NCBI GenBank assembly: GCA_977017575.1
Contig: CDRNVI010000063.1
Span: 615,993 to 679,992, forward strand
DNA from: Paramoeba atlantica
Taxonomy: Eukaryota > Protista > Discosea
Length of the DNA stretch: 64,000 nucleotides
Reading direction: 5' to 3'
The position numbers and the translations under genes were made by a program. This document shows positions 740-64,000 of the stretch, in pieces. The stretch's first letter is position 1. Each line of letters starts with the position of its first letter. Under the pieces are notes generated by a model. That model saw only the letters and a list, made by a program, of their open reading frames with translations. It did no database searches and had not been told where the DNA came from.

Positions 740-754
740 AGGTTCTTGTTAGGT

Positions 755-14400: not shown

Positions 14401-14872
14401 CGACAGGTGAAATCTTCTATGATCTCACCGTCGTACACGATCTGGCACCATCTCTTGCGGGAACAACACCGGCGAAGGCAATCAAAGATGCGATCGCGCG
14501 GAAAAACACCAAATACGTCTCATCGAATATGTTCGCCGAGGAGCGATTCGCCTGTTTACCGGTGCTGTCAAGTGGCTCGTTGCACGCCCGAACTCGGGAG
14601 CTGCTACGGCTTCTGGCGGAAAAGATTTCTATTGAGCCCAGCAAGGTGGAAAACGATTTCATACTTCTCTTGCAGGAGATGAATGGAAACATTCTCCTAG
14701 GCCAGCTCAGAAAGTACCTGAGCCAAAGCCATGGGGACGATATTTGCGCTTTTTGATGGAATATGCAGTGAGAATCCGTGGTAGGAAGTCTCATAGTTTA
14801 CGAAAAGAATTGTTTGAAGAGGATTCGCAGTTTATATCATACAATTATTAAGACAACGTTTAAAAAAAAAAA
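11497..14872 (+). mobile_element. CRE-type non-LTR element G, probably 5'-truncated; RT-CCHC-RLE; frameshift in the T-run near 12840
   Basis: ORFs 11431..12849 and 12540..14756: RPVAVGE, GVRQGSPLS, YIDD, CPGC...HIPGC, KHNALV, GPDLVIYW...YDLTVVH; poly(A) 14862-14872. Confidence 0.9.
14845..14861 (+). repeat. Single copy of array-A unit (TTATTAAGACAACGTTT) directly before the poly(A) of element G
   Basis: Exact 17-nt match to array A sequence. Confidence 0.85.
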
Positions 14873-21582: not shown

Positions 21583-21585
21583 GAA

Positions 21586-24476: not shown

Positions 24477-24589
24477 GGGACAGGATCACCAAATACAAAA
24501 AAAAAAAAAAAAAAAAGTCACACATTACTCGTCACACATGACGACCGGCTGGATTCATTCCGAACTGGTCGTTTGCGCCCATGAACATC

Positions 24590-34000: not shown

Positions 34001-35758
34001 TGGACGTACAAGTCAGCAAAATGCGAAGATGGGTATGCGGAGTAGGGAAAAGATGGAAAACGGGAAAGTGCATTCGTCTTGAATCTCTTTATCAAGATGA
34101 CTTGAAACTCAGCACAACATCAAAAATACAACGTGCTCAACTTATTGGCCATCTTGTTCGACATGAATCGCCGTTTAGCCTAGCCATTCTGTGGCGCGTG
34201 CAAGACAAATCATCATACCCTTCGATCTCTGAATTATGCGCAAAAGATTTAAATCTTTCAATAGAAGAAGTCATACATTCGTCTCGGGACCGCGCCTTAT
34301 GGAGGTCAAGCGTTGATCGACTACGAAATCGGATCGAACCACGCCCTGATTATGTACCCATCGAAGCAAAATCATGGGAAAAACGAGCAATGGTTGCACG
34401 AAAAGAATATAAGTCACTACAATTCGTCGAAGAAGGCGCATTGCCATTCCCAAATATTTCTCCAGCCGTACACATGTATACTGATGGCTCCCTTAAAACA
34501 ACGAAATCGAAAGTTACTCCTGGATGCGGAATCGTGTGGTGGGGGGATGGTATTGAGAAGTCCTTAATGGGAGTACGACCTCCAACGGATATTGAGCTCA
34601 CCATAACTGCGGTAGAGCTCTATGCCGTATATGAGGCACTGAATCTTGCGGCACATTATGGGCAGGACATTGTATTACACACAGACTCAAAATACGTATG
34701 GGAATTCTTCCACATTATAAGGCATCGATTTTGCATAGTTGGGTTTCAATTATTCCAGAGCGCGCAACTACTCAAGAAGATACAACTTTTGTGTTCTAAG
34801 ATCGAGCAAAATAGCAATGTATATTGCATCAAAACCAGAGGGCATGAAGGAAACCCGCACAACGCAACCTCAGACTGGCTCGCTAAACGAGCTTGCGCAC
34901 ATCAAGACGAAAACCCTTCCTTTACTTACCGCGGTTTTGATATCGTGACCAATCAAAAGAGGAAAGGTAACGAAATTCAAAACAATATGAAAAAGAACAA
35001 AAACAAAAATACGAAATTACCAGAGTTTGCGCACACACCTATCGAAATGTCTCCTACGCACTCTATAAGCACGAAAAATAAAGGTAACCTGATAAATGAA
35101 AAGGGGAAACGATCAAGATCCAAGAACAAGCGTGAAAATGCGAATACGCACAGCAACCAAAAAGCACGAAAAGCTGATGGAAAGAGGAGTACGAATACAT
35201 ATTCACCAGGATTCGCAGAGGTAACTTTAGCAAGAAAGCATCCACAAAGAAAGCGAGCTAATTGTGAAGAGGAGTGCAAGAGAACTCGAAAGGGGGGGAG
35301 CTCTTCTTCTAAAACGTGATTTTGGAAGCCCAAAAGTTGAATGGAGTATCATTTTATTTATTTTGTTTATTTATTTTTACTTTTATTTTATATTCAATAA
35401 TGCGATCAATTGGTCTGTTTCAGCAGTTGAAGAGGGGGTTGTGAGACGAAGGGTTGTTCATATATTTATATATATATTTATAAATTGTATTTATACGTTA
35501 TTATTTGTTTTAGTTGTGTTTCGCCAGCAGATAAGGTGGCCAAGTGTATGGGAGGTGAGTTGGAGGACATTTTCGCCCTATAGGGCCATTCTCATAAGAA
35601 AGTAATGAGGATGCACGAGTTCTTGGCTGCAGATGGACTCTTTGCGCGTAAATTTTATGTGAGTTTACATGGAGAAGTGTTTATGTTTATGGTGTAAATT
35701 GTAAACCCCCCAGCTGATATATATGTATCAGTGTCTTTGTTGTTTGTTGTTGTTGTTG
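31010..35758 (+). mobile_element. Full-length APE-RT-RNase H non-LTR element, family B, with (TTG)n tail
   Basis: Single ORF 31024..35319; about 440-nt 3'UTR; TTG repeats 35737-35758. Confidence 0.9.
31024..35319 (+). CDS. 1431-aa APE endonuclease-RT-RNase H polyprotein
   Basis: APE STMNV, LQETR, NVYSPT, GDMNA, QLDHI; RT NWRPI, NQFGFR, VDFKQAF, GTLQGDVLAP, YADD; RNase H YTDGS, ELYAV, HTDSKY, RGHEGNPHNATSDWLA. Confidence 0.95.
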   Translation: MAEASGPFESVLEVCGKLRTARCGRGNLFLPPQQRGVGTKLRQRALLQMSKVLAVGKRVAVVWCMAYNERITLWEGVVHSSLDGSGWLVKYDLMNGRLLPFPPRDDRIHVLGGRVGLLPKSLRKRNRKRKSCFRRGYREQRPKIKAMREGFAVSTMNVDTLKCKTTDEFALRKCFRLHQAVEFMRSYGVTIMALQETRLSFKSEEPIIHRRLYLAGISVHIYIMSAIKGYNGMAMLSLQPMGVEKINDRIMKGTMHIGKMKACIFNVYSPTAGAKKDKQESFDEELFDAWHDSQCSLKIICGDMNAPLQDPNGRKCCSERAQEFRKFLVTLGSKSAHQCCSAERKWTYRFPPTPKHPDGLTKQLDHIIINSRFSSAFRYQKVLLAPIPTRHCAVIAGLNIKWRVACKPGKLQPFWGSLRNETICDTFVKNVEESIQGGNKRSREGSIGPALWDKLSSAVNSAAEKLPRKIANIGKAPDSETDSHSLDMKTIVQIARNRRTFDTFAREHGKMIEECVKEECEVIQEKLYKCPKSAYQAIRYIVGENRKVFSMFGENVRDSMCRVRGHFQAIGNQLNQISEPINFPNCNKSLIGIEDTEFTLKELRISLQKVKSGKASGSDNIPIEALSTLAQSEEALGMLLNIINEVMCTGAAADKWKMILQVPLPKKGNLNDLTNWRPICIVNHVVKVMNRMVLERIQPAVENMLRSNQFGFRPHRSTAGAKATFVEIATKASRGEGVAVAFVDFKQAFPSVTFSAIRDALRAFHIPENITKVIMSMYEGLKSYVRTPHGDTESFSIENGTLQGDVLAPYLFIMVLDRIMAEAIDAKGLGVIAYSTGTKSRGEKHLRISDVAYADDVVLFASSRSELSEMLENLCKYAKRANLQVNLGKNKTAWMVLGKIDDMTAPLLVPSVGEIPRVYKYKYLGSTQENENRHVAPQERIRLGWATMHKLHAIWNSPIQVASRLKIFRTLVMPVINYNCGTWNISSNQMSELDVQVSKMRRWVCGVGKRWKTGKCIRLESLYQDDLKLSTTSKIQRAQLIGHLVRHESPFSLAILWRVQDKSSYPSISELCAKDLNLSIEEVIHSSRDRALWRSSVDRLRNRIEPRPDYVPIEAKSWEKRAMVARKEYKSLQFVEEGALPFPNISPAVHMYTDGSLKTTKSKVTPGCGIVWWGDGIEKSLMGVRPPTDIELTITAVELYAVYEALNLAAHYGQDIVLHTDSKYVWEFFHIIRHRFCIVGFQLFQSAQLLKKIQLLCSKIEQNSNVYCIKTRGHEGNPHNATSDWLAKRACAHQDENPSFTYRGFDIVTNQKRKGNEIQNNMKKNKNKNTKLPEFAHTPIEMSPTHSISTKNKGNLINEKGKRSRSKNKRENANTHSNQKARKADGKRSTNTYSPGFAEVTLARKHPQRKRANCEEECKRTRKGGSSSSKT

Positions 35759-43304: not shown

Positions 43305-43334
<30 letters not shown>

Positions 43335-44457
43335 AATTAATAAGGGGGGAGAAGTATGAATCGCGGCATTGCCTCTATATTTTGACCCAGTAGACGAACC
43401 AAGTACATAGTAGGTCCATTAGGGGGGTATATGAATTTAAAGGGGTATATGAATTTAAAATAAAATTTTTTTTTTTTTTTTTTAGATATCGTAAAAGAAC
43501 CATGAAGGTCCATTGGGGGGGGTATATGATTTGTAAACAAGCAATCAAATTAGCAATTTCACATGTTGTAGCCCAAAACTAGTAATTCAACCTGCCTTAA
43601 GTTATTTATGATTCTGATAACAATAATAATAAAAAAGGAAGCAATCCACGCCCAATCCATCCGCGCGTTCCATTTTTTTTTTTTTTTTTTTTTTGTTTTT
43701 ATGCAAATAAAGAAAATTTTTCTCTCTCTTTCTCCTCTTTCTCACCTCTTGACATACTTTTCCCACCTTTCTCCCTACTTTCCTGCTTTCCCCTACCCAA
43801 CTTTTCAACTTTTCAGGGGGGGTAAGGTCTCCCTCAGCTTCGCCTCACCCGGCCTGCAGGCGGCTCCTCAACCATTCGCGCGTTCCGGACCGGGTCTTTC
43901 GACCTCTCCACGGCCTGACTTGTGGACCTTTTTTTTTTTTTTTTTTTTTTTAGGGGGGAGAAGTATGAATCGCGGCATTGCCTCTATATTTTGACCCAGT
44001 AGACGAACCAAGTAGGTCCATTGGGGGGGTATACGAGTTGAAAACAAGTAATCAAATTAGCAATTCTTTTTGTTTCCACAGATGTACCTTTTGTTTTTTC
44101 TCTCAGCCCAAAACTAGCAATTTTTTTTTTTTTTTTTTTTGTTTTTATGCAAATAAAGAAATTTTTTCTCTCTCTCTTTCTCCTCTTTCTCACCTCTTGA
44201 CATACTTTTCCCACCTTTCTCCCTACTTTCCTGCTTTCCCCTACCCAACTTTTCAACTTTTCAGGGGGGGTAAGGTCTCCCTCAGCTTCGCCTCACCCGG
44301 CCTGCAGGCGGCTCCTCAACCATTCGCGCGTTCCGGACCGGGTCTTTCGAACTCTCCACGGCCTGACTTGTGGACCCTTCCCTTGTTATACGGGAGGGCG
44401 CAGGCGCGGGCCTGTGTCAACAGCGACACGGTCACGTGTCGCTGTTTTGTCACGTGT
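43305..44457 (-). mobile_element. Stack of poly(A)-ended E-family 3'UTR modules with chimeric inserts (about 43695-43927 duplicated at 44141-44375)
   Basis: Repeated AATCGCGGCATTGCCTCTATATTTTGACCCAGTAGACG and CCATTCGCGCGTTCCGGACCGGG blocks separated by long T-runs. Confidence 0.8.
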
Positions 44458-48129: not shown

Positions 48130-48142
48130 CAACAAGGTACAG
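48130..48142 (-). other. Retroposed partial spliced-leader exon (3' 13 nt, CTGTACCTTGTTG)
   Basis: Match to SL 3' end, 31 nt upstream of ATG 48098; fused to a broken APE-family RT. Confidence 0.7.
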
Positions 48143-49550
48143 TAAGCATGATTTTTAATTCAGGTTTCGTTGCAGCAAACAATACAATATCATCCGCGTA
48201 ATCAATGTCAGAAATTCTCAGTTCTTTGAGTCCTCGACTTTTTGTCCCGGATGTGTGCGTTACCAGCCCGAGCTTGTTCATGTCAATATCCTCTACCAAA
48301 ATTCGGTCCAGAACCATAACAAATAAGTAAGGAGCTAGAACATCTCCTTGAAGAGTGCCGCTTACAATAGGAAAATCTTCCGTTGTTCCGTAAGGGGTCC
48401 GTACATGAGATCGAAGATTTTTGTAAATTGACATCACAGCTGCACTCAGTTTTGGAGGTATTTCAAAAGCTCGGAGAGCCTCTTCAATCAATGATTCATC
48501 TTACTTTGCTTGCTTGTTTGCTCGTTTTTCCTAGAAGGATTGTTATTCCAGGTTGAAAAGTGATATTCAAAAAGTGTATCAATATCCACCTAATTGCCAC
48601 GGTGCCAATACTACTGTCGAATTGTTTGGTCCATTGTATTCTCTCAAAATGATTGAAAAACATAGCACGGGAAGCCTCTTTTATGGAGTCGAACGATATT
48701 GATGGAAAGGCTTTCTTGAAGTCTACGAAACATGCGTACACGCCTGTTCCTCTGTGCGATTTGCTTGCAATCTCCATAAATGTTGCCTGCGCGCCTGCTG
48801 TAGATCGATTCGGGCGGAAACCAAATTGGTTCCCACGGAGAGACTTCTCTACTGCTGGTTGGATGCGGTTTAGGATCATTCTGTTCAACACTTTAACCAC
48901 ATGGTTGACAAGGCATATTGGTCTCCAATTTCCCAGTGATTGCAAGTTTCCATTTTTTGGCAGCGGTACCTGTAATATGGACTTCCAAGATTGTTCCGCG
49001 TTCCCAGTTTCATGAACATCGTTCATTATATCAAGCAAAACAGTTCTCAACTCGCTGTCATCTGAAATTGCTCTGAGCGCCTCGATAGGTATGCTATCAG
49101 CCCCAGGAGCTTTTCCCGATTTGACCATTTGAAGAGCTGAAGACAATTCTTCTGGGCGAAATTTTCCGTCGTCAATCTGTTCTAAGCGTTTCGGTGCCGT
49201 TGGAAATCGAATGGTGCCTTTTTCAGCCACTGTCTCGTGTCCGACTTTCGAAAAATGATTTCTAACTGCTTCGAGACTTTCTTTGGCAGTTCTCCCAAAT
49301 ATTGCAAATTCACTTCTATTATCCCCAACAATATTTCGTATGGTTCTATACGCTGATTTAGGCGCCGATTTTAGTTCCTTTTCCAAAATTTCACACTCAG
49401 TTAAAATAGATGTCTCAATTCGATCAGAAAATATCTTAGTCGCATGTTTAAATTCACTTTTGCTGGAAACTACTTTCATAATATTCTTTAAGTTTAACAC
49501 ATCTGGGTCAATTTCCGAAAGAGCCGCATTATCCGCATTTTTTATTTGAT
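48143..49550 (-). pseudogene. Internal RT fragment of another APE-RT-RNase H family, with an about 165-bp insertion near 48495-48655
   Basis: GKAPGADSIP, NWRPICLVNHVVK, NQFGFR, VDFKKAF; then GTLQGDVLAPYLF, IDYADD. Confidence 0.85.
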
Positions 49551-50110
49551 CCCCTTGACGCTGAAGGGATCGCATGTAGGCTGTTACTGTCGACTTTTGC
49601 AATTGACCCCCAGATCGGAATATGATTTGTATCAGACTCTTTGCATACGTATGTGCGGTTTGGATGCTGATGGTACCCGTTGAGTTTGCGGATTGATTAG
49701 TCTCATTTTCGACTCCAAGAAGCATATTATGCACCAATCTTCGCTTGGAACGTCATTTCCGAGATTTTCCTTCCAAACTGTATACTGTTTGTATACGCTG
49801 GAAAGGTGATTCCAGCGCGAGTTGGATTTCTCTTCTAATAGACGATCCTGGCCTAGTACGATCATTTGTTGAACGTCGACTGTAGGAATCGCGGCTCTTG
49901 TTTCTCTGTTGCCTTCCACGCGGTCGAGGAAGAGGTCTTCGATCTCCAGTAAGTTCTTTGCTCTTGATCTTGTTACTATCCCTGTAAAAGCCCTGTTGCT
50001 CGTGGAAGGTTGCTTGTACTGAGTACTTCGGACATGACTGGTAGTGCCGGCGCCGGTTGTGGTTTCCGTTTGATTTCCGTATGTTTCGTTTCCCGGGTAC
50101 GAGGACACTT
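49550..50110 (-). pseudogene. N-terminal fragment of a VIPER/TATE-like tyrosine recombinase
   Basis: SRWNHLSSVYKQY...WCIICFLES and SIQTAHTYAKSLIQII...TAYMRSLQRQG align by eye with ATWATRERLWFRL...AVLFLET and STRMGYAGALRTLF...SLYVKALQAQG of 21586..22770. Confidence 0.6.
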
Positions 50111-50821
50111 CCGTGAGTACTCATCGAAACGCCCACGTGTCAAAACGAAACTCATCGAAACGAAAGAAACTCATCGAAGGTGATTTTAATTACTTTTGAG
50201 GTGGTAGCTGCATTTTCGACTAAAAAACAAATACACAATACTGCGGAAGTGGCAGACATAGGTCCTCAGTGCGCGATCTCAGTGCGGAGTTAATATCCTC
50301 CACCTCTCGTGCTCTAATCTTGAGCGCCGAAAATCCCATTCTGCTCGGTTGGACCTCGAGGCACTGGTTGGCGTAAACGTCGGGATGAATATGAAGGGTG
50401 TAGCTGTGGGGCGTGTCTTTTGGAAGTCTGTTTGTAAGACAGATTAGTATGAAGTAAAGCCCTTGAAGGGGCAAAGATATCAGAACGCTGAAAATATGGA
50501 GTAAAAAAATGCATTAGAAATCAACGGACCCTTTTTTTAAGAATAAATTATAAGAAGATATACGTTGACAACGCCTGCGTAGCGAAAACTACGAAATTCA
50601 GTGAGCTTCGCAAATTGCTTCCCACTAACGACGCACAGGGGAATCCTACGCGGGGTACGGCTCAGGCCCGCTCACGCGGGCCCTCGCCGTTTCGCGGCCG
50701 CGCGCACCCCCGCTCACGCGGGGGCCCCCGCGCGGCCAAAATGGGTACTAAAATTTGTTATCAAGGTAGTTGGGCTTCGCAAATTGCTTCCCACGAATCT
50801 AGAGAGAAGCACACGTACAAT

Positions 50822-50860
50822 AATCTTTAACGATAAAGATACAGTTTCTGCACCTTGTTG
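50822..50860 (+). other. Retroposed full-length spliced-leader exon (39 nt, one T>C)
   Basis: AATCTTTAACGATAAAGATACAGTTTCTGCACCTTGTTG followed by a T-rich UTR and ATG 50884. Confidence 0.85.
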
Positions 50861-50883
50861 ATTATTTACTTTTTTTACCTTTC

Positions 50884-51159
50884 ATGGGAGTGTTCACACG
50901 CTCCAAAGCAAAAGAATCAGGAGTGGCTCCTGAGATTTTGCCGCTCCCTCCTGCCCGCCGGAAAAAGAAGGCCGTGATGCCAACTCCTCCTCCGCCCGCC
51001 GTGCCAATATCCACCACCTCCGCATGGAGCGCGCGGGTCGCCAAAAAATATAATTTTGTCCCAGGGCTACGCTCACAGTTGGGCCTTGCTCGCAAACGGG
51101 GGCTTTTGCCTCCAGAAGTGGGCTTCGCTCAAAGTTGGGCCTTGCCTCCAGACACGTAA
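50884..51159 (+). CDS. Short Pro/Lys-rich ORF homologous to the mini-element ORF at 2618-3253
   Basis: MGVFTRSKAKESGVAPEILPLPPARRKKK vs MGMITRSRAKETGVAPVVQPLPPTRRRKK; both contain QLGLAR. Confidence 0.6.
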   Translation: MGVFTRSKAKESGVAPEILPLPPARRKKKAVMPTPPPPAVPISTTSAWSARVAKKYNFVPGLRSQLGLARKRGLLPPEVGFAQSWALPPDT

Positions 51160-51556
51160 ACTAGGTGTCATAGTATAGGAAAACAAATACACAAACCTGC
51201 GGAAGTGGCAGACACAGATTCTCAGTGTCGCCGCTTTCTTATTTTCATGTTCTCGATTTTTTTCTTGCCAAAGCAATTAAAATCACCTTCGATGAGAAGA
51301 TTGACGTTTCGATGAGTCACCCTGTGACACGTAGGCACTTCGATGAGAAATCATCGAAGTGTCTCAAAAACTCACTGAAGTGCCCGTGGAGCCCGTTTCC
51401 CTCTTCTTGAAATTGATTTTTTATGCCCCTTAATAAATATATTTCCAGAATATTCTTCACTGTAAAGATTATTGCCCCTAATGTCGATAGTTCTATTATA
51501 TTGCCCCTTATATAATCTATTGTTTCTTGGACTAAATTTCTGTTGAATTCTTCGAG

Positions 51557-52329
51557 TCAGAATTTTTTCCCTTGCGGTTTTGTCATCGGGCCCGCGTTTC
51601 GCCCTGTTCGGTCGTTTTTTGTATCCATGGCTTTGATCATTGCAGGTAGAATTTTTCCCCGCAGTCCCCCGGTCGTTTTTGCTTCTTCAAGAACCTGTGC
51701 GAAGACGCGGCAGTCCCCATGTTGAACGCGAACTTTGTAAGCAACCAACGCCGCCAATATGTTGTCCCCGACCGCCATGTTCCCGTCTGATTTCCATACA
51801 AGTCCCATTTTCATTGAGTTTCGCACCCAAGCCAAAAATGCTAGCAACAAATCGTTCTTCCGATGCTCGTCTTGGTGATAGCGTGGGGCATTGCGTTCGG
51901 CAGCTCCAATACCAAAGTAGCGACGCAAATGAGCGTCCAATTCCACAAAACTACGATCTCGCGTCTCCGAGGGTGCCTCGATGAACATCGCGTACGTAGA
52001 TAATTCAAGCGGTTCGAACGTTCCAGTCTCTCGGCCTTCAACACGCTCCATCGCAGCGGAGTAAGGGTCAGTGGCGAGTTTCTCCACCACACGTAATCGA
52101 GCATTCGTCGGAGGAAACGTAAGCTCGCCAATTTCGCATAGTCCACCAACATGGTTGTTTTCTCTTCGCCAATCTTCTTCACCACTCCCTTCCACATTTC
52201 TCCACGTGGCACTTTGTCTGAGGACCATAAAACCGCGATAGTGTCGCCAACCTGACTCTCGGCCACAAACCGTCCAATGCGAGAGTCAGATAGTTGGGGG
52301 AGGTCATTCACGGTGCGTTTTTTTTGCAT
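51557..52329 (-). pseudogene. Frameshifted gag/ORF1-like gene, homologous to 20713-21582
   Basis: FEPLELSTYAMFI ~ YDPVTWQPWI; KNDLLLAFLAWV ~ RERLFKMLTEWV; NMAVGDNILAAL ~ NLAVALLIIEEL; split between ORFs 51841..52329 and 51557..52228. Confidence 0.65.
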
Positions 52330-52331
52330 TG

Positions 52332-53614
52332 AGAGTGCATAAATCCACTTTGGCGCGCCGCTGCTGCTGCGCGTGGTCTCAGGTTTTGGTTTTCAGAAAA
52401 AGGCATATCAAAGTTTTGTGACTTCACGACTTCAATCGCGGCGATTTGCGTGTGCGGTGCCTCGGATCGCGCAACGCAAATCCATCAACATTCGGAGCGC
52501 ACACTCACGAGTGCATAAATCCACTTTGGCGCGCCGCTGCGTGCTGCGCGTGGTCTCAGCTTTCGGTTTTCAGAAAAAGGCGCATCAAAGTTTTGCGACT
52601 TCACGACTTCAATCGCGGCGATTTGCGTGTGCGGTGCCTCGGATCGCGCAACGCAAATCCATCAACATTCGGAGCGCACACTCACGATTGCATAAATCCA
52701 CTTTGGCGCGCCGCTGCGTGCTGCGCGTGGTCTCAGCTTTCGGTTTTCAGAAAAAGGCGCATCAAAGTTTTGTGACTTCGCGACTTCAATCGCGGCGATT
52801 TGCGTGTGCGGTGCCTCGGATCGCGCAACGCAAATCCATCAACATTCGGAGCGCACACTCACGAGTGCATAAATCCACTTTGGCGCGCCGCTGCGTGCTG
52901 CGCGTGGTCTCAGCTTTCGGTTTTCAGAAAAAGGCGCATCAAAGTTTTGCGACTTCACGACTTCAATCGCGGCGATTTGCGTGTGCGGTGCCTCGGATCG
53001 CGCAACGCAAATCCATCAACATTCGGAGCGCACACTCACGAGTGCATAAATCCACTTTGGCGCGCCGCTGCGTGCTGCGCGTGGTCTCAGCTTTCGGTTT
53101 TCAGAAAAAGGCGCATCAAAGTTTTGCGACTTCACGACTTCAATCGCGGCGATTTGCGTGTGCGGTGCCTCGGATCGCGCAACGCAAATCCATCAACATT
53201 CGGAGCGCACACTCACGATTGCATAAATCCACTTTGGCGCGCCGCTGCGTGCTGCGCGTGGTCTCAGCTTTCGGTTTTCAGAAAAAGGCGCATCAAAGTT
53301 TTGTGACTTCGCGACTTCAATCGCGGCGATTTGCGCGATGTGTGCGGTGCCTCGGATCGCGCAACGAAAATCCATCAACATTCGGAATGCGCACTCACGA
53401 GTGCATAAATCCACTTTGGCGCGCCCCTGCTGCTGCGCGTGGTCTCAGGTTTTGGTTTTCAGAAAAAGACATATCAAAGTTTTCTGACATCACGACTTCA
53501 ATCGCGGCGATTTGCATGTGCGCTGCCTCGGATCGCGCAACGCAAATCCATCAACATTCGGAGCTCACACTCACGAGTGCATATATCCACTTTGGCGCGC
53601 CGCTGCGTGCTGCG
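52332..53614. repeat. 177-bp tandem repeat, about 7.2 copies
   Basis: Anchor CA(T/A)A(A/T)ATCCACTTTGGCGCG recurs at 52338, 52514, 52691, 52868, 53045, 53222, 53404, 53580. Confidence 0.95.
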
Positions 53615-53673
53615 AAACCATATGTGATACATTCGTGAAAAATGTGGAGGAGTCAATTCAGGGGGGAAATAAA
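53613..53673 (+). other. 61-bp insert identical to an internal segment of element B (32283-32343)
   Basis: CGAAACCATATGTGATACATTCGTGAAAAATGTGGAGGAGTCAATTCAGGGGGGAAATAAA at both sites. Confidence 0.9.
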
Positions 53674-53679
53674 GGGGGG

Positions 53680-54574
53680 AGACTACTACGAGTAGATCTT
53701 ATGTTTTCCTTTTTGTAAATTATGCAGTCTGACTTAGCTTCTAATATCGATTAGAAGTTCGGATTCTCTTTTGACCATGGATCTCCAACTCTAAATTCCC
53801 AACTCTGCGGCACCCTTATCCTTCTCCAGAAAAGACCGCAGCTGTGAATGCACAACGGCCCCATTTAACTCTTGCAGGTGGAGCTGAAATTCGAGGTGTA
53901 CTTGCTTCCGGGGGAGACAGCACGCATCTGCTAGAGCACTCAGAAGGGACTTCGTGTTGTGGTGAAGCGCCCCCCCTGACAGCATTGGAATGCATCTGAA
54001 CATGTCCTCAGGAATTGTGCCGGGTCGGACGTAAGTGTCATGCTTACGTTTGATGGCATCACGAAACAGCTTTGCACAGTTTGTACCTAGGTTCGATGCC
54101 TCTAATTCATGAATTACGGTGAAATCATAAAAAATTTCCCCTGTATTCCAAAAAACGACAAGGTCAGGTCCTGATCTTCGAAAAGAACGACCACCGCATA
54201 CCTTTTCATGCGTCCGCCGGTAATCGGAGTCCACTTTCTGGTTACACTGCGTGCACGCATATGTCGAGAAATTACGCGGTTCTTTTTCGCATGGAATGCC
54301 TGCCTTCAAACAGAGCTCGTAAAGAAAATTGACTAGCGAATTATGTTTTGTAGTTGCGTTTAAGCCTTGGCACTTCGAACACCCGGGGATGTGTGTTAAA
54401 ATTGTTTGCGATTCTAGTAGCATTTTGCAACCCGGGCAGAGCAATTGCTTAGGTAGACTCGGATGAGCAATACCCAATCTCGGCATCATTGCAAGCGAGA
54501 ACAAATGCGAGGGCACAAATTTTGCATTGGACATAACCCATTCTGCATTACCCGTGTAACTTACCGCTTTCAGG
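53680..54574 (-). mobile_element. 3' fragment of a G-like CRE element (CCHC-RLE and 3'UTR)
   Basis: ORF 53791..54606: CPGC...HIPGC, KHNSLV, RSGPDLVVFWNTGEIFYDFTVIH. Confidence 0.87.
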
Positions 54575-57500
54575 ATCCAATCCAATCCAATCCAAAAGAC
54601 CGACATATGTCGGTTAGAATGTTAAATGTTTTCCCCCCGAACTTATACTCCCTCGCCTTCCAGTTCAGAGTTTAGTAGTGCCTACTATTTTACTTTCACA
54701 CAATACTTTTCCTTTATCTTCCTGAACTCTTCCTCAGGGTATTCCGAACCTGCTGGTGGAAACACGTCTTCCGCCCAACTCTTACTATGAAGGCGCCCTC
54801 TTTCCACCAGTTTTCGCAATCTTCCCGCACAGCGTGACTTTAGCCTCGGCGCCACGCTTGGGTGCTGGATTGGTTTTCGTCTTTCCCTTTTCCAAGGTTC
54901 TATGTTTTATCAGCTTTTCCAAGGATTTGTCGATTTGTGATGCGTTGGAATCATTACTTGTTTTTCTCTTTTTCTGCTCAGGCGGTCGAGGAACTTTTCG
55001 CGCTGCAATCAGTGCTAACCCATCTGCCTCGTCGTTCCATTTATTTCCTGAGTGACCCTTGACTTTGCACATATATATTGAGTACAAATCATGTTTTAAG
55101 GACCGTAATTTTCCGTCTAACTGGGAGAACAAATCTCCATTTAAAACCCCCTTGTAACCAACGATTCGCCGCCGATATCGAAGATTGTGAAAGAAGTCCC
55201 ATAGATAGTAAGAGTCTGTATGAAACAGACAAGCGCATGGTTTTGACGGCAGTTGGAGAAGGGCATGCTGAAAAGCTAAGATCTCTACTCGCTCAATAGT
55301 GTCTGATTCCAATGGTATGGATATCCGTGAGGGTTCGCATCGTGGTTTTAGAACTACGATACCTATGCCACTTCGAATCTCTTTCGTATTTTTCATCGGC
55401 AGAACAGAGCCATCGGTATATATTTGTATGGCTTTATAGGCTGGAAAAGGCACATTTGATTCTTCAACGAACTGTAATTCTGAAGGACTTTTTTGTTTTT
55501 TAGCTTTGGCAAGAGCAGTTTTCCACTTTGCTGACCCAATTTTTTCGTATTCTATGAGCGGTTCAAGTTCACGTCGCAATTTTTCTGTCAGACGATACCA
55601 GTGTTCACGGTCTGACGCAAATACCAATGCCTCTTCCAGTGTAATGTTAAGATCCTTGAAGCAAGCCTCGCTTGGAGATAAATTGCGTGCATTCGGGCGT
55701 TGTTTCCACTGTACAAGCTCTTGAAAATCACTGGAGTGCCTCAGCATGTGCCCGACGAGCTTGGCCCTCTGAACCTTGTGTATAGTAGAAAAGCGCTCAG
55801 TTTCAAGATACAGAGAAGCATTCGGGTAGCTCATTCCGTATTCATCTAATCTGTTGCATTGGCAAACTATTCTTCTCATGTTATTAACTTCAACGTCAAT
55901 TCTTCGGAGCATGGATTTTGAAATAGAAAGTGCACCTGTCCCAAAGTTTAGCACCGGATATACTATTGAATCGTAGAGGCGCAGCTTAGTCTCCGGGCTA
56001 AGTGGTGAAGACCAAATACCATTCATTCGAAAGAGAGATCCCCAAGCTAGTTTCAATCGATCTTTAACTGTAGATGTAAAATCATTTTCCTGCCGATGCC
56101 CTAAGTGTTTGTAAGACGTAACTTTCGGAATCATCCCCGAGAATTTGCTGTTCAGGCTCTCGCTGCTCATTTGAGATTTACCAAAAGTTAACCAGGCTGT
56201 CTTGTTTGCTCCGACGGCTAGTTTCAGATTAGCTTTGCGTGACTCTTCAGCTACATTGTCTATCATATTTGTCAAACCAATCTTCGTGTCACTAAATAAC
56301 GCTATATCGTCCGCATACTCAATGTCACTCAGGCGCTTTTCATGAAGACCCCGCTTTCTTGTACCCCTAGAGCTGAGAAGAACCCCGTCTGATTTTCCAT
56401 CTAGTGCTTTATTGAGAATTCTATCTAACACCATAACGAACAGATAAGGCGCCAATACATCACCTTGAAGTATTCCTGTAGTGATAGGGAAAGGTTTTGT
56501 GATTCCAATAGAAGTTCGTACAGTGCCTTTCAGCTCATCGTATATAGACATTATCATCTTAGAAAGACATGGACCTACTCGAAATGCATGCAAACTAGCT
56601 TTAATAGCAGCGAACGATACCGAAGGAAATGCTTTAGCAAAGTCTATAAAAGCTACAGAAAGGCCTTGTCCTCTGAATGCTTTGGTTTTTATTTCGTTCA
56701 TGATAATCTGAGCTCCAGAAGTCGCTCGGTTAGGTCGAAACCCATACTGGTTACCCCGAAGAGACTTTTCAATGTTGGGTCTAATGCGGGAGAGTATCAT
56801 ATGATTCATGAGCTTAACTACGCTATTTACTACGCATATAGGCCGCCAATTCTCAATGTTAGTGAGGTCTCCTTTCTTTGGGATGGGTATTTGAAGAGTG
56901 TTGCGCCAGGCTTCCTCTGTGACTCCCGTTTCGTGTACCTGGTTGATTATATTCAGGAGATGCGATCTCAGATCAGGGTGGACCGCTATAGCTTGAAGGG
57001 CTTCCATTGGTATTCCGTCACTTCCCGGTGTTTTTCCTCTTCTGAAATGTTCTAAAGATGTGCTTAACTCCTCGCTTGTAAATGCTGCATCGGATATTGG
57101 TACTAACGGCGGCGGCAGCAGTTCAAAGCTAAGATTTGGATCTCCATCATCAGCGCCACTAAATTTCATGAAGTACGATCGAATTTCGTTAAGTTTATCA
57201 TTTCGTGAGCTTCCGTTCGTGCTAAAGGTATCACGATATTGCCCGCATATCTTTCGAATCGTTCTCCATGGGTTTGAATGGTTTTTACGAAGCTGTTTTT
57301 CAATCTCCAAGCATTCGTCAGAAATAATCTCTTCAACTTCCGCTTTATTCTCCTTTACGAGAGCGTTGAACACCTTTTTGTTTCTGCTCTTGTGATATAA
57401 ACCGCGCAAATCATGTATTTTTGAGTCCTTTACAGCTTCTTTGTTCAAATTTCGTTTCGTCGGTTTTTTGAAAGTTTTTACAGCATTTTTCATATATTGT

Positions 57501-58876
57501 GCGAGAGCGCCCCATGATCGACAAGAGTTCGAGGTTGCTCGATATTGGTCGTGAACTTTATTGATGAAATTCTTCCTATCCTCACTATTTCGAAGAGAAA
57601 TCCACGAGAGCTGATTCGTATTCGTTTTGGGATCACTGACTCGCCATTTAATTTTAATTCTGGCTATAACACAACAGTGAGTAGTAGGAATGGGTGCCTT
57701 GATCACTTTGTGTCGTTGAATTGCCGATGCAAATCTGCTACAAATAAATATGTGATCTAACTGCCTTAAAGCTTTGTTTGGTAATTCGCATGTCCATTTC
57801 CGACTACTTGGACAAAGACTGTGCGCAGACTTACAGTCTATAGAACAAGAAAGTCCTTTAAGACGGGCGGCCGCAATGGGATCTAGATCCTTATTTGTTA
57901 TATGTGTCAAAGGTGCATTAAAGTCGCCCAGCACAATTAATGGGCGACGCGGGTTGCTTTCCCTTATTCTCAAGCAGCAACGTTCGAGTTCTCCGTAGAA
58001 CTCCGTAACCTCGACGTCCTTAGAATCGCGTGTAGGAGAATATACGTTAATAACTGTTGCGACTCCTTCCTCCATCTCAAATTCACCCGACATAATCCTT
58101 TCACTGATTTTAGATACCTTAGACAAGGGAAAAGTGCTGACGAATCCCATTCCATTGTATGCATCCTTTGCGCGCGCTGGAATGAGGCTCAAGTGAAACT
58201 CTGCGTTCCGATATTGTACTTTGCGGTGAAGGACATCCGACTTTTCAGAAGATGGGAATCTAAATCGCGTTTCCTGCAGGCCCAGAATATTTATTCCCTT
58301 CAGATCAATGAAGGTAAGTACTTCGCAAAGGTGTCCGCACTTTCGTAGGCTAAACTCGTCTTCACCTTTCAGCTTAAGAGTAGTTACGTTCAAGGTTCCC
58401 ACACTCAACATTCTCTTCACAGCGGGGCCCCCAGGGCCCACCAAGTCACGGAGAGCACGTTTGCCAGACTGTGCCCTGTATTTGCGAGAGCGCTTTTTGA
58501 AACGACGTCTACGCTTAGGCGCACAAACCCGAGCAGCACAGAGGACGATGTGAGGACTACATGGAGGGAACGGAAGCGTAAATCGCGAACACTGAGCGTA
58601 GCGAACACGCCAGCGGCTCGGCACCCAACTCTCTACTACCCCCTCCCAAACACTGTAGTTCGATGAATCCGCGTACCTCCAAACCACCGAAAGCTTAGCG
58701 CCTAAACAAAGCAGTCGCATAATGTGTCCTAACGACCTCGCGCGGAGTTTAGCAGATTCCGTTCCACCCTTCGCAGGACGGAAAAGAATCCCCCGATCAA
58801 GCTTGGAACACGCAAGAAGATTCATAATAGCAGTGGGCATGCGTGCACCGGAAGCATCCGCCATTTTGCAAATAAA
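54575..58876 (-). mobile_element. Full-length APE-RT-RNase H non-LTR element, family C, with (GATTG)n tail
   Basis: Single ORF 54785..58864; about 190-nt 3'UTR; ATCCA repeats at 54575-54595 on plus. Confidence 0.9.
54785..58864 (-). CDS. 1359-aa APE endonuclease-RT-RNase H polyprotein
   Basis: GTLNV, LQETR, NVYSPT, GDFNA, QLDHI; NWRPI, NQYGFR, IDFAKAF, GILQGDVLAP, YADD; YTDGS, EILAF, HTDSY, KGHSGNKWNDEADGLA. Confidence 0.95.
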   Translation of the reverse strand: MADASGARMPTAIMNLLACSKLDRGILFRPAKGGTESAKLRARSLGHIMRLLCLGAKLSVVWRYADSSNYSVWEGVVESWVPSRWRVRYAQCSRFTLPFPPCSPHIVLCAARVCAPKRRRRFKKRSRKYRAQSGKRALRDLVGPGGPAVKRMLSVGTLNVTTLKLKGEDEFSLRKCGHLCEVLTFIDLKGINILGLQETRFRFPSSEKSDVLHRKVQYRNAEFHLSLIPARAKDAYNGMGFVSTFPLSKVSKISERIMSGEFEMEEGVATVINVYSPTRDSKDVEVTEFYGELERCCLRIRESNPRRPLIVLGDFNAPLTHITNKDLDPIAAARLKGLSCSIDCKSAHSLCPSSRKWTCELPNKALRQLDHIFICSRFASAIQRHKVIKAPIPTTHCCVIARIKIKWRVSDPKTNTNQLSWISLRNSEDRKNFINKVHDQYRATSNSCRSWGALAQYMKNAVKTFKKPTKRNLNKEAVKDSKIHDLRGLYHKSRNKKVFNALVKENKAEVEEIISDECLEIEKQLRKNHSNPWRTIRKICGQYRDTFSTNGSSRNDKLNEIRSYFMKFSGADDGDPNLSFELLPPPLVPISDAAFTSEELSTSLEHFRRGKTPGSDGIPMEALQAIAVHPDLRSHLLNIINQVHETGVTEEAWRNTLQIPIPKKGDLTNIENWRPICVVNSVVKLMNHMILSRIRPNIEKSLRGNQYGFRPNRATSGAQIIMNEIKTKAFRGQGLSVAFIDFAKAFPSVSFAAIKASLHAFRVGPCLSKMIMSIYDELKGTVRTSIGITKPFPITTGILQGDVLAPYLFVMVLDRILNKALDGKSDGVLLSSRGTRKRGLHEKRLSDIEYADDIALFSDTKIGLTNMIDNVAEESRKANLKLAVGANKTAWLTFGKSQMSSESLNSKFSGMIPKVTSYKHLGHRQENDFTSTVKDRLKLAWGSLFRMNGIWSSPLSPETKLRLYDSIVYPVLNFGTGALSISKSMLRRIDVEVNNMRRIVCQCNRLDEYGMSYPNASLYLETERFSTIHKVQRAKLVGHMLRHSSDFQELVQWKQRPNARNLSPSEACFKDLNITLEEALVFASDREHWYRLTEKLRRELEPLIEYEKIGSAKWKTALAKAKKQKSPSELQFVEESNVPFPAYKAIQIYTDGSVLPMKNTKEIRSGIGIVVLKPRCEPSRISIPLESDTIERVEILAFQHALLQLPSKPCACLFHTDSYYLWDFFHNLRYRRRIVGYKGVLNGDLFSQLDGKLRSLKHDLYSIYMCKVKGHSGNKWNDEADGLALIAARKVPRPPEQKKRKTSNDSNASQIDKSLEKLIKHRTLEKGKTKTNPAPKRGAEAKVTLCGKIAKTGGKRAPS

Positions 58877-61800
58877 TTTACAAAAAACTTGATCTTTACA
58901 AAAAACTTGATCTTTACAAAAAACTTGATCTTTACAAAAAACTTGATCTTTACAAAAAACTTGATCTTTACAAAAAACTTGATCTTTACAAAAAACTTGA
59001 TCTTTACAAAAAACTTGATCTTTACAAAAAACTTGATCTTTACAAAAAACTTGATCTTTACAAAAAACTTGATCTTTACAAAAAACTTGATCTTTACAAA
59101 AAACTTGATCTTTACAAAAAACTTGATCTTTACAAAAAACTTGATCTTTACAAAAAACTTGATCTTTACAAAAAACTTGATCTTTACAAAAAACTTGATC
59201 TTTACAAAAAACTTGATCTTTACAAAAAACTTGATCTTTACAAAAAACTTGATCTTTACAAAAAACTTGATCTTTACAAAAAACTTGATCTTTACAAAAA
59301 ACTTGATCTTTACAAAAAACTTGATCTTTACAAAAAACTTGATCTTTACAAAAAACTTGATCTTTACAAAAAACTTGATCTTTACAAAAAACTTGATCTT
59401 TACAAAAAACTTGATCTTTACAAAAAACTTGATCTTTACAAAAAACTTGATCTTTACAAAAAACTTGATCTTTACAAAAAACTTGATCTTTACAAAAAAC
59501 TTGATCTTTACAAAAAACTTGATCTTTACAAAAAACTTGATCTTTACAAAAAACTTGATCTTTACAAAAAACTTGATCTTTACAAAAAACTTGATCTTTA
59601 CAAAAAACTTGATCTTTACAAAAAACTTGATCTTTACAAAAAACTTGATCTTTACAAAAAACTTGATCTTTACAAAAAACTTGATCTTTACAAAAAACTT
59701 GATCTTTACAAAAAACTTGATCTTTACAAAAAACTTGATCTTTACAAAAAACTTGATCTTTACAAAAAACTTGATCTTTACAAAAAACTTGATCTTTACA
59801 AAAAACTTGATCTTTACAAAAAACTTGATCTTTACAAAAAACTTGATCTTTACAAAAAACTTGATCTTTACAAAAAACTTGATCTTTACAAAAAACTTGA
59901 TCTTTACAAAAAACTTGATCTTTACAAAAAACTTGATCTTTACAAAAAACTTGATCTTTACAAAAAACTTGATCTTTACAAAAAACTTGATCTTTACAAA
60001 AAACTTGATCTTTACAAAAAACTTGATCTTTACAAAAAACTTGATCTTTACAAAAAACTTGATCTTTACAAAAAACTTGATCTTTACAAAAAACTTGATC
60101 TTTACAAAAAACTTGATCTTTACAAAAAACTTGATCTTTACAAAAAACTTGATCTTTACAAAAAACTTGATCTTTACAAAAAACTTGATCTTTACAAAAA
60201 ACTTGATCTTTACAAAAAACTTGATCTTTACAAAAAACTTGATCTTTACAAAAAACTTGATCTTTACAAAAAACTTGATCTTTACAAAAAACTTGATCTT
60301 TACAAAAAACTTGATCTTTACAAAAAACTTGATCTTTACAAAAAACTTGATCTTTACAAAAAACTTGATCTTTACAAAAAACTTGATCTTTACAAAAAAC
60401 TTGATCTTTACAAAAAACTTGATCTTTACAAAAAACTTGATCTTTACAAAAAACTTGATCTTTACAAAAAACTTGATCTTTACAAAAAACTTGATCTTTA
60501 CAAAAAACTTGATCTTTACAAAAAACTTGATCTTTACAAAAAACTTGATCTTTACAAAAAACTTGATCTTTACAAAAAACTTGATCTTTACAAAAAACTT
60601 GATCTTTACAAAAAACTTGATCTTTACAAAAAACTTGATCTTTACAAAAAACTTGATCTTTACAAAAAACTTGATCTTTACAAAAAACTTGATCTTTACA
60701 AAAAACTTGATCTTTACAAAAAACTTGATCTTTACAAAAAACTTGATCTTTACAAAAAACTTGATCTTTACAAAAAACTTGATCTTTACAAAAAACTTGA
60801 TCTTTACAAAAAACTTGATCTTTACAAAAAACTTGATCTTTACAAAAAACTTGATCTTTACAAAAAACTTGATCTTTACAAAAAACTTGATCTTTACAAA
60901 AAACTTGATCTTTACAAAAAACTTGATCTTTACAAAAAACTTGATCTTTACAAAAAACTTGATCTTTACAAAAAACTTGATCTTTACAAAAAACTTGATC
61001 TTTACAAAAAACTTGATCTTTACAAAAAACTTGATCTTTACAAAAAACTTGATCTTTACAAAAAACTTGATCTTTACAAAAAACTTGATCTTTACAAAAA
61101 ACTTGATCTTTACAAAAAACTTGATCTTTACAAAAAACTTGATCTTTACAAAAAACTTGATCTTTACAAAAAACTTGATCTTTACAAAAAACTTGATCTT
61201 TACAAAAAACTTGATCTTTACAAAAAACTTGATCTTTACAAAAAACTTGATCTTTACAAAAAACTTGATCTTTACAAAAAACTTGATCTTACAAAAAACT
61301 TGATCTTACAAAAAACTTGATCTTACAAAAAACTTGATCTTACAAAAAACTTGATCTTACAAAAAACTTGATCTTACAAAAAACTTGATCTTACAAAAAA
61401 CTTGATCTTACAAAAAACTTGATCTTACAAAAAACTTGATCTTACAAAAAACTTGATCTTACAAAAAACTTGATCTTACAAAAAACTTGATCTTACAAAA
61501 AACTTGATCTTACAAAAAACTTGATCTTACAAAAAACTTGATCTTACAAAAAACTTGATCTTACAAAAAACTTGATCTTACAAAAAACTTGATCTTACAA
61601 AAAACTTGATCTTACAAAAAACTTGATCTTACAAAAAACTTGATCTTACAAAAAACTTGATCTTACAAAAAACTTGATCTTACAAAAAACTTGATCTTAC
61701 AAAAAACTTGATCTTACAAAAAACTTGATCTTACAAAAAACTTGATCTTACAAAAAACTTGATCTTACAAAAAACTTGATCTTACAAAAAACTTGATCTT

Positions 61801-64000
61801 ACAAAAAACTTGATCTTACAAAAAACTTGATCTTACAAAAAACTTGATCTTACAAAAAACTTGATCTTACAAAAAACTTGATCTTACAAAAAACTTGATC
61901 TTACAAAAAACTTGATCTTACAAAAAACTTGATCTTACAAAAAACTTGATCTTACAAAAAACTTGATCTTACAAAAAACTTGATCTTACAAAAAACTTGA
62001 TCTTACAAAAAACTTGATCTTACAAAAAACTTGATCTTACAAAAAACTTGATCTTACAAAAAACTTGATCTTACAAAAAACTTGATCTTACAAAAAACTT
62101 GATCTTACAAAAAACTTGATCTTACAAAAAACTTGATCTTACAAAAAACTTGATCTTACAAAAAACTTGATCTTACAAAAAACTTGATCTTACAAAAAAC
62201 TTGATCTTACAAAAAACTTGATCTTACAAAAAACTTGATCTTACAAAAAACTTGATCTTACAAAAAACTTGATCTTACAAAAAACTTGATCTTACAAAAA
62301 ACTTGATCTTACAAAAAACTTGATCTTACAAAAAACTTGATCTTACAAAAAACTTGATCTTACAAAAAACTTGATCTTACAAAAAACTTGATCTTACAAA
62401 AAACTTGATCTTACAAAAAACTTGATCTTACAAAAAACTTGATCTTACAAAAAACTTGATCTTACAAAAAACTTGATCTTACAAAAAACTTGATCTTACA
62501 AAAAACTTGATCTTACAAAAAACTTGATCTTACAAAAAACTTGATCTTACAAAAAACTTGATCTTACAAAAAACTTGATCTTACAAAAAACTTGATCTTA
62601 CAAAAAACTTGATCTTACAAAAAACTTGATCTTACAAAAAACTTGATCTTACAAAAAACTTGATCTTACAAAAAACTTGATCTTACAAAAAACTTGATCT
62701 TACAAAAAACTTGATCTTACAAAAAACTTGATCTTACAAAAAACTTGATCTTACAAAAAACTTGATCTTACAAAAAACTTGATCTTACAAAAAACTTGAT
62801 CTTACAAAAAACTTGATCTTACAAAAAACTTGATCTTACAAAAAACTTGATCTTACAAAAAACTTGATCTTACAAAAAACTTGATCTTACAAAAAACTTG
62901 ATCTTACAAAAAACTTGATCTTACAAAAAACTTGATCTTACAAAAAACTTGATCTTACAAAAAACTTGATCTTTACAAAAAACTTGATCTTTACAAAAAA
63001 CTTGATCTTTACAAAAAACTTGATCTTTACAAAAAACTTGATCTTTACAAAAAACTTGATCTTTACAAAAAACTTGATCTTTACAAAAAACTTGATCTTT
63101 ACAAAAAACTTGATCTTTACAAAAAACTTGATCTTTACAAAAAACTTGATCTTTACAAAAAACTTGATCTTTACAAAAAACTTGATCTTTACAAAAAACT
63201 TGATCTTTACAAAAAACTTGATCTTTACAAAAAACTTGATCTTTACAAAAAACTTGATCTTTACAAAAAACTTGATCTTTACAAAAAACTTGATCTTTAC
63301 AAAAAACTTGATCTTTACAAAAAACTTGATCTTTACAAAAAACTTGATCTTTACAAAAAACTTGATCTTTACAAAAAACTTGATCTTTACAAAAAACTTG
63401 ATCTTTACAAAAAACTTGATCTTTACAAAAAACTTGATCTTTACAAAAAACTTGATCTTTACAAAAAACTTGATCTTTACAAAAAACTTGATCTTACAAA
63501 AAACTTGATCTTACAAAAAACTTGATCTTACAAAAAACTTGATCTTACAAAAAACTTGATCTTACAAAAAACTTGATCTTACAAAAAACTTGATCTTACA
63601 AAAAACTTGATCTTACAAAAAACTTGATCTTACAAAAAACTTGATCTTACAAAAAACTTGATCTTACAAAAAACTTGATCTTACAAAAAACTTGATCTTA
63701 CAAAAAACTTGATCTTACAAAAAACTTGATCTTACAAAAAACTTGATCTTACAAAAAACTTGATCTTACAAAAAACTTGATCTTACAAAAAACTTGATCT
63801 TACAGAAAACTTGATCTTACAAAAAACTTGATCTTACAAAAAACTTGATCTTACAAAAAACTTGATCTTACAAAAAACTTGATCTTACAAAAAACTTGAT
63901 CTTACAAAAAACTTGATCTTACAAAAAACTTGATCTTACAAAAAACTTGATCTTACAAAAAACTTGATCTTACAAAAAACTTGATCTTACAAAAAACTTG
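58877..64000 (-). repeat. Tandem array C (element strand GTAAAGATCAAGTTTTTT, 18 bp, and a 17-bp variant), over 5.1 kb, runs off the window
   Basis: Plus strand TTTACAAAAAACTTGATC / TTACAAAAAACTTGATC in alternating homogeneous blocks. Confidence 0.98.

Follow-up and report, generated by a model that had tools for sequence, protein, structure and literature searches.

The 64-kb window analyzed here (contig CDRNVI010000063.1, positions 615,993 to 679,992; coordinates below are those of the window) ends in an intact retrotransposon that lacks long terminal repeats (non-LTR), element C (54576-64000, minus strand), whose 5' end consists almost entirely of a tandem array of 17- and 18-bp units. Related elements in other assemblies are built in the same way, and a long interspersed nuclear element (LINE) with a tandem-repeat 5' end is a real, recurrent and apparently undescribed feature; no account of this architecture was found in the literature library that we searched. 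We favor, at about an even chance of being right, the interpretation that the array repeats in tandem the terminal ~18 nt of the element's own 5' end and represents a module conserved in the clade, which would grow by stutter and act as a cis signal.

Structure of element C

Element C carries a single intact open reading frame (ORF) of 1359 amino acids (54785-58864, minus strand) with no internal stop codons, in which an N-terminal domain (M-A-D-A-S-G) is followed by an apurinic/apyrimidinic endonuclease (APE), a reverse transcriptase (RT) and an RNase H. Pfam identified Exo_endo_phos (residues 182-378), RVT_1 (661-922) and RNase_H (1144-1285), and the motifs QETR, GDFN, LDH, FIDFAKAFP, YADD, TDGS and HTDS were found in the protein. 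An AP endonuclease preceding the RT in one ORF is the arrangement of APE-type LINEs, and the protein gives a colinear alignment to human L1 ORF2p (E=8e-20) and also matches RNase HI.

Upstream of the ORF lies array C (58877-64000, minus strand), delineated with Tandem Repeats Finder (TRF), a unit census and a block map, which comprises about 290 units of 17 and 18 bp, GATCAAGTTTTTTGTAA(A), and extends to the final base of the window. TRF reports a period of 18 bp with 291.8 copies and 99% matches. When read in the sense of the element, that is, along the minus strand, the array contains 162 copies of GATCAAGTTTTTTGTAAA, 127-128 units of 17 bp with one A fewer and one substitution variant, and the two unit lengths are arranged in four pure blocks in the order 17/18/17/18 bp. 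Only a 12-nt leader, TTTATTTGCAAA (58865-58876, minus strand), separates the array from the ATG (58864). Together with the AAA before it, this leader can be read as one more unit, degenerate (“unit 0”), that extends up to the start codon, with a ~12/17 match as judged by eye. At the other end, a 3' untranslated region (UTR) of ~190 nt leads to the microsatellite tail (TTGGA)4 at 54576-54595 (UTR and tail together, 54576-54784, minus strand). Beyond element C, the tail is joined directly to a 5'-truncated, CRE-like element of the restriction-like endonuclease (RLE) type (53640-54575, minus strand; tblastn and sequence), of which residues ~478-732 of a protein resembling that of family H and the 3'UTR are left; this fragment is 49% identical to family H of the window. 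The structural part of an initial annotation of this DNA, namely, an intact 1359-aa APE-RT-RNase H ORF, a distance of 12 nt to a nearly invariant array that runs off the window, and a 3' tail fused mid-ORF to a CRE fragment, proved accurate in each respect. The long “ORFs” within the 18-bp arrays (for example, 58889-61303 on the plus strand) are artefacts of a stop-free 6-codon period, and stop where 17-bp units change the frame.

Recurrence of the array in related elements

The initial annotation had also pointed to the same architecture, with a different unit, in family B of the window, and this was borne out. Array B (26778-31009, plus strand; TRF, sequence and tblastn) consists of 235 units of TTAAGACCACTTTTTGTA, of which 232 of 234 are identical, and is followed by element B (31010-35319, plus strand; Pfam, tblastn and sequence), that is, a 14-nt leader, TACGTTGGTACAAA (31010-31023), and an intact APE-RT-RNase H ORF (31024-35319) encoding a protein of 1431 aa that is 37% identical to that of C. 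The last TTAA of the array and the TAC of the leader form a degenerate partial unit, TTAATAC, after which 11 unique nucleotides, GTTGGTACAAA, lead up to the ATG.

A profile search of European Nucleotide Archive (ENA) and JGI data yielded ~15 members of the clade. The related loci drawn on here include the ENA contigs L005 (assembly ERZ24900291), L008 and L009 and the JGI metagenome contigs L010 and L011. In L008, 8.6 units of the array A type (see below) and a decayed unit precede a B-like N-terminus that is 53% identical to residues 3-93 of B. The contig L010, with a protein 32% identical to B, opens with 5.9 perfect 18-bp units followed by ACATG, and L011 (29% identical to B) opens with 6.5 perfect 19-bp units, the ATG lying 10 nt past the periodic run; both contigs derive from other samples. 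Overall, a perfect 17-19-bp array, a degenerate last unit and an ATG within 4-14 nt were found in 5 families from at least 3 independent assemblies and this recurrence supports the array as belonging physically to the element, as opposed to lying beside it by chance. According to the boundary table, the unit nearest the ORF is decayed in all 5 families, includes the leader and continues up to the start codon. This codon begins a conserved N-terminus, M-A-[DE]-A-S-G followed by RGxLF, in B, C and L036; the A-like copy in L008 has the N-terminal motif with a 1-nt frameshift, and in L037 the motif is present without an ATG.

The units of the different families are related in sequence. Units A and B match at 15 of 18 positions (shuffle p=2e-4), A and C at 13 of 18 (p=0.01), and B and C at 12 of 18 (p=0.03), such that the most similar units go with the most similar proteins (53% identity between the A and B N-termini). 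A run of T followed by a (T)AAG(A) core is common to units A, B, B' and C, and looser versions occur in the units of L010 and L011 and in L036 and L037, where the 5' region is single-copy. The claim that chance adjacency is unlikely, which had rested on families B and C, is thus strengthened by the layout of 5 families and by unit similarity that follows protein relatedness.

The 3' ends of the clade are family-specific microsatellites, namely, (TTGGA)n, (ATT)n, (TAGG)n, (TCCTTAG)n, (CGTAT)n, (TAGT)n and (AGT)n, observed in C, element X of the window (see below), L010, L011, L012, L036 and L037. There are also 5'-truncated copies, that is, X, fragment I of the window and a copy in L009; a target-site duplication was seen in X alone (the upstream flank of C lies outside the window). 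The nearest named database matches are insect Jockey/I-like proteins, at no more than 29% identity. The search with the full-length C protein reached relatives at 27% identity or less only, because its search words came from the poorly conserved N-terminus, and the distant matches L001-L004 showed 3'UTR repeats or nothing, and were uninformative. An exact look-up of the C protein gave no record, a scan of the JGI metagenomes for array C gave no match, and protein-pattern scans returned one irrelevant fragment from the prokaryote genome set and none from viral contigs.

The host spliced leader and the 5' end of the clade

The poly(A) and RLE-type elements that surround element C have in common a 38-nt sequence at their 5' ends, ATCTTTAACGATAAAGATACAGTTTCTGTACCTTGTTG, which is either complete or 5'-truncated. 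In the window, copies are located at 43272(-), 38555(-), 3294(-), 50848(+), 16683(+), 48142(-) and 736(-), and others were found in L005-L007; the sequence stands at the start of RLE-type, family D and other poly(A) elements, often immediately following the poly(A) tail that ends the element before it. In its ACAGTTTCTGTAC core and its overall design, the 38-nt sequence agrees with the 39-nt spliced leaders listed for kinetoplastids and diplonemids (PMC3795323). This match to the kinetoplastid/diplonemid design therefore indicates that the host is a euglenozoan with a spliced leader of this type. The leader-bearing elements are, by the same token, recognizable as copies of trans-spliced mRNAs that pile up head to tail. 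Family E has a 99% identical counterpart in ENA assembly ERZ24900291, which, by this identity, appears to hold the organism of the window or a close strain. The clade of C is best read as a group of single-ORF APE-RT-RNase H non-LTR elements of euglenozoan hosts with microsatellite 3' tails.

One copy of the P0037 family carries a spliced-leader relic exactly at the position where A, B and C have their arrays, which supports our preferred interpretation in that the array position would correspond to the RNA 5' end in this clade. The same relic, together with the host leader on the neighboring elements, could also suggest that the arrays themselves are piled-up leader relics, with each round of trans-splicing and retrotransposition contributing one, as seen in dinoflagellate retrogenes, or with slippage on the leader generating them. 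Unit C matches nucleotides 12-30 of the leader at 16 of 20 positions with one gap (shuffle p ~0.008), and unit B aligns with it colinearly (p ~0.16). Units A and L011, however, have no significant similarity to the leader, the units differ from the host leader at 4-7 positions as well as between families in one genome, no spliced leader was found at any distal array end, and unit 0 of C is closer, by eye, to the 5'UTR that follows the leader in the L037 relative than to the leader itself. We consider the pile-up unlikely: a spliced-leader origin of the ancestral unit is possible, but leaves the family-specific units and the leader-free distal ends unexplained.

Small stacks of partial leader 3' ends (TGTACCTTGTTG-like, 7-13 nt) precede some elements in L006 (18958-18990, minus strand) and L009 (4131 and 15189, both minus strand), and also speak in favor of a pile-up; they are reminiscent of the spliced-leader relics in dinoflagellate retrogenes. 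The likeness to that system extends to a trans-splicing host in which neighboring RLE-type retrocopies start with a full or partial leader; the difference is that the array units are distinct from the host leader. Similarly, the element adjoining C is of the RLE type of CRE, SLACS and CZAR, but the CRE-like elements here carry the leader at their own 5' ends, and none was seen inside spliced-leader RNA genes.

Array size, distal ends and orphan arrays

Copy numbers of the units in long-read contigs are 0.8, 3.1, 6.4, 6.8, 8.6, ~115 (the two parts of array A combined), 235 and at least 285. The spread is wide even within family B: a second copy, in L008, is 99.0% identical to B of the window over 2559 nt, yet has 0.8 units compared to 235. 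Its homology starts inside unit 0 (TTTTTGTATTAATAC...), with 15 nt of the last unit retained, and is joined to the ORF of an H-like element. The array is inserted together with the element, is not obligatory, and is highly variable in copy number. The distal ends of the arrays meet unrelated DNA, for example, a D-like ORF cut mid-way in the case of array B and a poly(A) tail in the case of the A-like copy of L008. Six distal ends begin within one 7-nt phase window of the 18-nt unit, which is suggestive (p ~0.05 by our own estimate). Furthermore, orphan arrays of 3-7 units occur inside other elements, in both orientations.

Array A, at the left of the window, is split in two. Its left part, A1 (4798-5185, plus strand; TRF and sequence), has 21.6 units of TTAAGACAACGTTTTTTA, and its right part, A2 (6818-8508, plus strand; TRF and unit census), has 93.9 units, in which the variant units form a higher-order pattern that is duplicated. 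Between them lies element X (5186-6817, plus strand; tblastn and sequence), a 5'-truncated APE-RT-RNase H element that begins at the RT YADD motif and ends with an (ATT)n tail. A1 ends with TTAAGA, and A2 restarts in phase with TTAAGA after the tail of X (phase read from the sequence). Because the array phase continues across X with this duplication, X is best read as an ordinary 5'-truncated insertion into an already existing array with a TTAAGA target duplication; for the same reason, the alternative that the array had been added onto the truncated copy at 5186 was dropped. The ORF of X ends with a Cys/His-rich motif, C-x-H-x-C-K-D-K-x3-C-x-H-x-C-C-K-R-H (6660-6720, plus strand), which is present also in P0036, P0037 and P0038, but not in C; P0037 carries a PHD-like finger as well.

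The position of X raises the question of whether the arrays are older satellites that the elements target, as TRAS and SART target telomeric repeats and Waldo and Mino target microsatellites. The apparent TTAAGA duplication around X, the match of its (ATT)n tail to the TTATTAA of the unit, and a 5'-truncated relative in L009 that adjoins a 177-bp satellite speak for such targeting. The 3' junctions of C, L010, L011, L036 and L037, however, lie in unrelated non-repeated DNA, and that of B looks likewise non-array (boundary by eye); each family has its own unit, with the proximal one a decayed copy that includes the leader and the start codon; and the B copy of L008 retains part of unit 0 at a non-array site. 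Site-specific insertion therefore seems to us highly improbable.

The initial annotation went further and proposed that the element joins a DNA end and is completed by reiterated short units serving as a telomere-like cap. This part of it found no support. It is true that array C is on the 5', that is, distal side of its element and exits the window, and that many neighboring elements are arranged head to tail with the poly(A) tail against the next 5' end, as in Drosophila telomeres. But arrays A and B are internal, between other elements, and the distal end of array B abuts a D-like ORF broken mid-way; two orientation switches within 64 kb preclude a uniform head-to-tail terminal array; the B copy of L008, for all its 99.0% identity, keeps 15 nt of one unit; orphan arrays sit within other elements in both orientations; and no TTAGGG-type repeats were found in the window or in any fetched locus. 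The host has a spliced leader of the kinetoplastid/diplonemid type, and trypanosomatids, which are of that group, keep telomerase telomeres, a fact known from these relatives. The GC skew of array C (-0.5), that is, an A/C-rich strand reading 5' to 3' toward the window end, fits the cDNA strand and lends no support to a cap. The telomere-cap reading is not supported, and we regard its chances as very slim; the array would rather be a 5' end device at the level of the element than a chromosome cap.

How the arrays might grow

According to our preferred interpretation, the RT would arrive at the 5' end of the RNA as target-primed reverse transcription (TPRT) closes, the tip of the cDNA would realign on the proximal unit, itself decayed, and copying of the terminal unit would be repeated many times in a telomerase-like stutter, with unequal exchange at the DNA level remodeling the arrays later. 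The units might serve as a signal in cis that the element requires at its 5' end, such as an initiator or promoter, or a recognition site for the ribonucleoprotein, and their many copies might buffer against 5' truncation. Stutter fits the near-perfect arrays that adjoin intact ORFs, the decay of the proximal unit, the common distal phase and the constant 17-19-nt period, and homogeneity (232 of the 234 B units identical beside an intact ORF) fits a single template. The growth route itself could be either RT stuttering at the RNA 5' end or expansion at the DNA level.

DNA-level expansion is the main rival. Under this model, the array is an ordinary 5'UTR repeat module like that of mouse L1, in which a few units are enlarged by slippage, unequal sister-chromatid exchange or satellite-like amplification, and the RT merely copies the product. 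In keeping with this model, A2 has a duplicated higher-order variant pattern and C has four pure blocks, an 18-bp array in L009 alternates two variants, many arrays in the long-read contigs are short (3-9 units), and this genome tandemly amplifies a 5.37-kb unit of E and its flank (L005) as well as the 177-bp satellite. Conversely, the 4.2-kb array B contains just two variant units beside an intact ORF, the unit length stays at 17-19 bp in 5 families from different hosts while the sequence changes, the distal ends have a common phase, and a copy with 0.8 unit cannot grow by unequal exchange, so that arrays would therefore also have to travel via RNA or arise at insertion. As the sole source of the arrays, we consider DNA-level expansion a plausible minority explanation. 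The blocks of C and the variant pattern of A2 show that duplication at the DNA level acts as well, and it could by itself explain the large sizes.

A bolder version of stutter, in which the RT works as a telomerase on the 5' end of its own RNA, realigning and recopying the last 17-19 nt hundreds of times to make kilobase-sized arrays de novo at each insertion, strikes us as doubtful. If the RT sometimes added repeats to other cDNAs or DNA ends, this may explain orphan arrays on truncated foreign elements. The 17-19-nt period could reflect the geometry of the enzyme, such as the spacing between polymerase and RNase H, which in retroviral RTs is ~17-18 nt.

Several observations weigh against the interpretation that we favor. 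The four pure 17/18 blocks of C and the duplicated variant pattern of A2 are what would be expected from unequal exchange or segmental duplication; errors from a fixed-template stutter would be dispersed one by one. On their proximal side, orphan arrays are flanked by unrelated sequence, at the truncated F element of the window, in L006 and in L008, with scattered proximal phases, and whichever model applies they would call for additional events, be they insertions, deletions or template switches; they may be either arrays broken by later events or arrays occasionally attached to other sequences. In the first of these cases, the proximal end of A2 adjoins a copy of an unrelated element, the poly(A) element F, that lacks its 5' part (8509-10424) and is 99.5% identical to 22650-24514, and a search 3' of the poly(A) tail of this copy for the body of an A-family element, which would make the junction a simple insertion, found none. 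The distal-phase statistic is borderline, and the arrays of L010 and L011 end at the contig starts (106 and 123 nt), so that their distal ends are uninformative. The relative in L012 is without an array, and only two full-length copies bearing long arrays were seen.

The problem that such arrays might solve is a long-standing one. Nearly every transposition costs a LINE its 5' end, which makes keeping a working one difficult, and in trans-splicing hosts a retrocopy additionally loses its upstream signals. If our interpretation is correct, a LINE clade that repeats its terminal 18 nt over stretches reaching at least 5 kb would have a new way to keep its 5' end. If, moreover, the repeats are made by the RT, this would be natural telomerase-style repeat addition by a retrotransposon enzyme, with a bearing on the proposed kinship of telomerase and non-LTR RTs. 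The arrays also illustrate how transposons can seed satellite DNA in repeat-rich genomes of the diplonemid or kinetoplastid kind. The mobile elements of such protists are barely described, and in the diplonemid genome the transposable elements were not rigorously characterized (PMC10161547).

Comparison with known systems

In domain order and host group, the elements resemble ingi/L1Tc, a likeness that is based on these features rather than on phylogeny. Ingi/L1Tc elements have one copy of the 77-nt Pr77 promoter/ribozyme at the 5' end and a poly(A) tail (PMC12278014). Element C likewise combines APE, RT and RNase H in a single ORF in a euglenozoan host, and has a special cis element at its very 5' terminus. 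Instead of a single Pr77, however, there is a reiterated 17-19-bp unit, and the 18-bp array with its 12-nt leader leaves no space for a unique element of 77 nt; the tail, (TTGGA)4 in C and other microsatellites in its relatives, is not poly(A).

The closest analogy in layout is the 5'UTR of mouse L1, in which tandem monomers (A, Tf, Gf) of ~200 bp are present in a few to about a dozen copies, the number varying between L1 copies. Here, too, tandem repeats of variable number form the 5'UTR directly before the coding region, but the units are 17-19 bp, roughly ten-fold smaller, the copies number at least 285, and the unique leader is nearly absent. With HeT-A, TART and TAHRE of Drosophila and with TRAS and SART of Bombyx, the elements have in common the use of TPRT and a neighborhood with head-to-tail runs of poly(A) tail to 5' end. 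They differ from the former in their mixed orientations and the internal position of arrays A and B, as opposed to a uniform terminal head-to-tail arrangement, and from the latter in that the same repeat does not flank both junctions, X inside array A being the only such case; moreover, the array-carrying elements are not the poly(A) elements that form the head-to-tail runs. Both telomerase and, at the 3' tail, the RTs of stringent-type LINEs such as eel UnaL2 reiterate a short template by realignment. The clade resembles these in its microsatellite 3' tails and in the reiteration of a short unit, but here, as far as the sequence suggests, an 18-nt unit at the 5' end of the template would be involved.

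Surroundings in the window

Throughout its length, the window consists of a nest of non-LTR retrotransposons. Among them are several families of the RLE type (E, G and H, along with the fragment adjoining C), family D and the poly(A) element F. There are four APE-RT-RNase H members, namely, C, B (31024-35319), the truncated X (5186-6817) and fragment I (48132-49548), and the 18-bp arrays detected by TRF besides that of C are A1, A2 and B. The elements are oriented in blocks, minus at 1-4797, plus from 4798 to ~35400, and minus at 35758-64000. A search of the PDB with the RLE-type E protein found no match, no Rfam family, HDV-like ribozymes included, was detected in the window at the gathering threshold, and a pattern search across the window revealed nothing additional.

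Element F (20713-24514; 8509-10424) ends in a poly(A) tail; one of its ORFs gives a weak zinc-knuckle match and another, of 837 aa, no more than a weak RT-RNaseH match, and no RT is recognizable. The 177-bp satellite occupies 52333-53614, with units 93-95% identical to each other, and is found also in L009 (4455-8309 and 15498-19454) as inverted arrays of ~3 kb, where it adjoins the 5'-truncated APE-RT-RNase H element mentioned above. It was ruled out as a spliced-leader gene, being without the leader sequence, and as the 5' array of fragment I, given that 49738-52332 shows no similarity to B or C. The faint POT1A matches of L009 ORFs are located within this satellite and were taken as spurious.

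In L005 (ena:ERZ24900291:ctg3698c), element E and a 520-bp antisense C-like fragment are repeated in tandem with a period of 5371 bp on a contig labelled circular; to judge from this structure, a whole retrotransposon is amplified there like a satellite. The 18-bp array of L009, CTGGTTGAGCATTTAATC (3072-3360 and 14130-14417), has two alternating variants in 11.7 units, followed by ~70 nt and (TTG)7, and may be a short non-autonomous derivative consisting of a 5' array and a 3' end; by eye, the stretch before the D-like element downstream of B ends in a similar TTG run. In the window, ~1.1 kb between E and D (43333-44456, minus strand) is made up of short poly(A)-ended pieces with an internal 98% duplication (43675-43931 and 44121-44379), and may represent a set of SINE-like (short interspersed nuclear element) or processed-transcript insertions.

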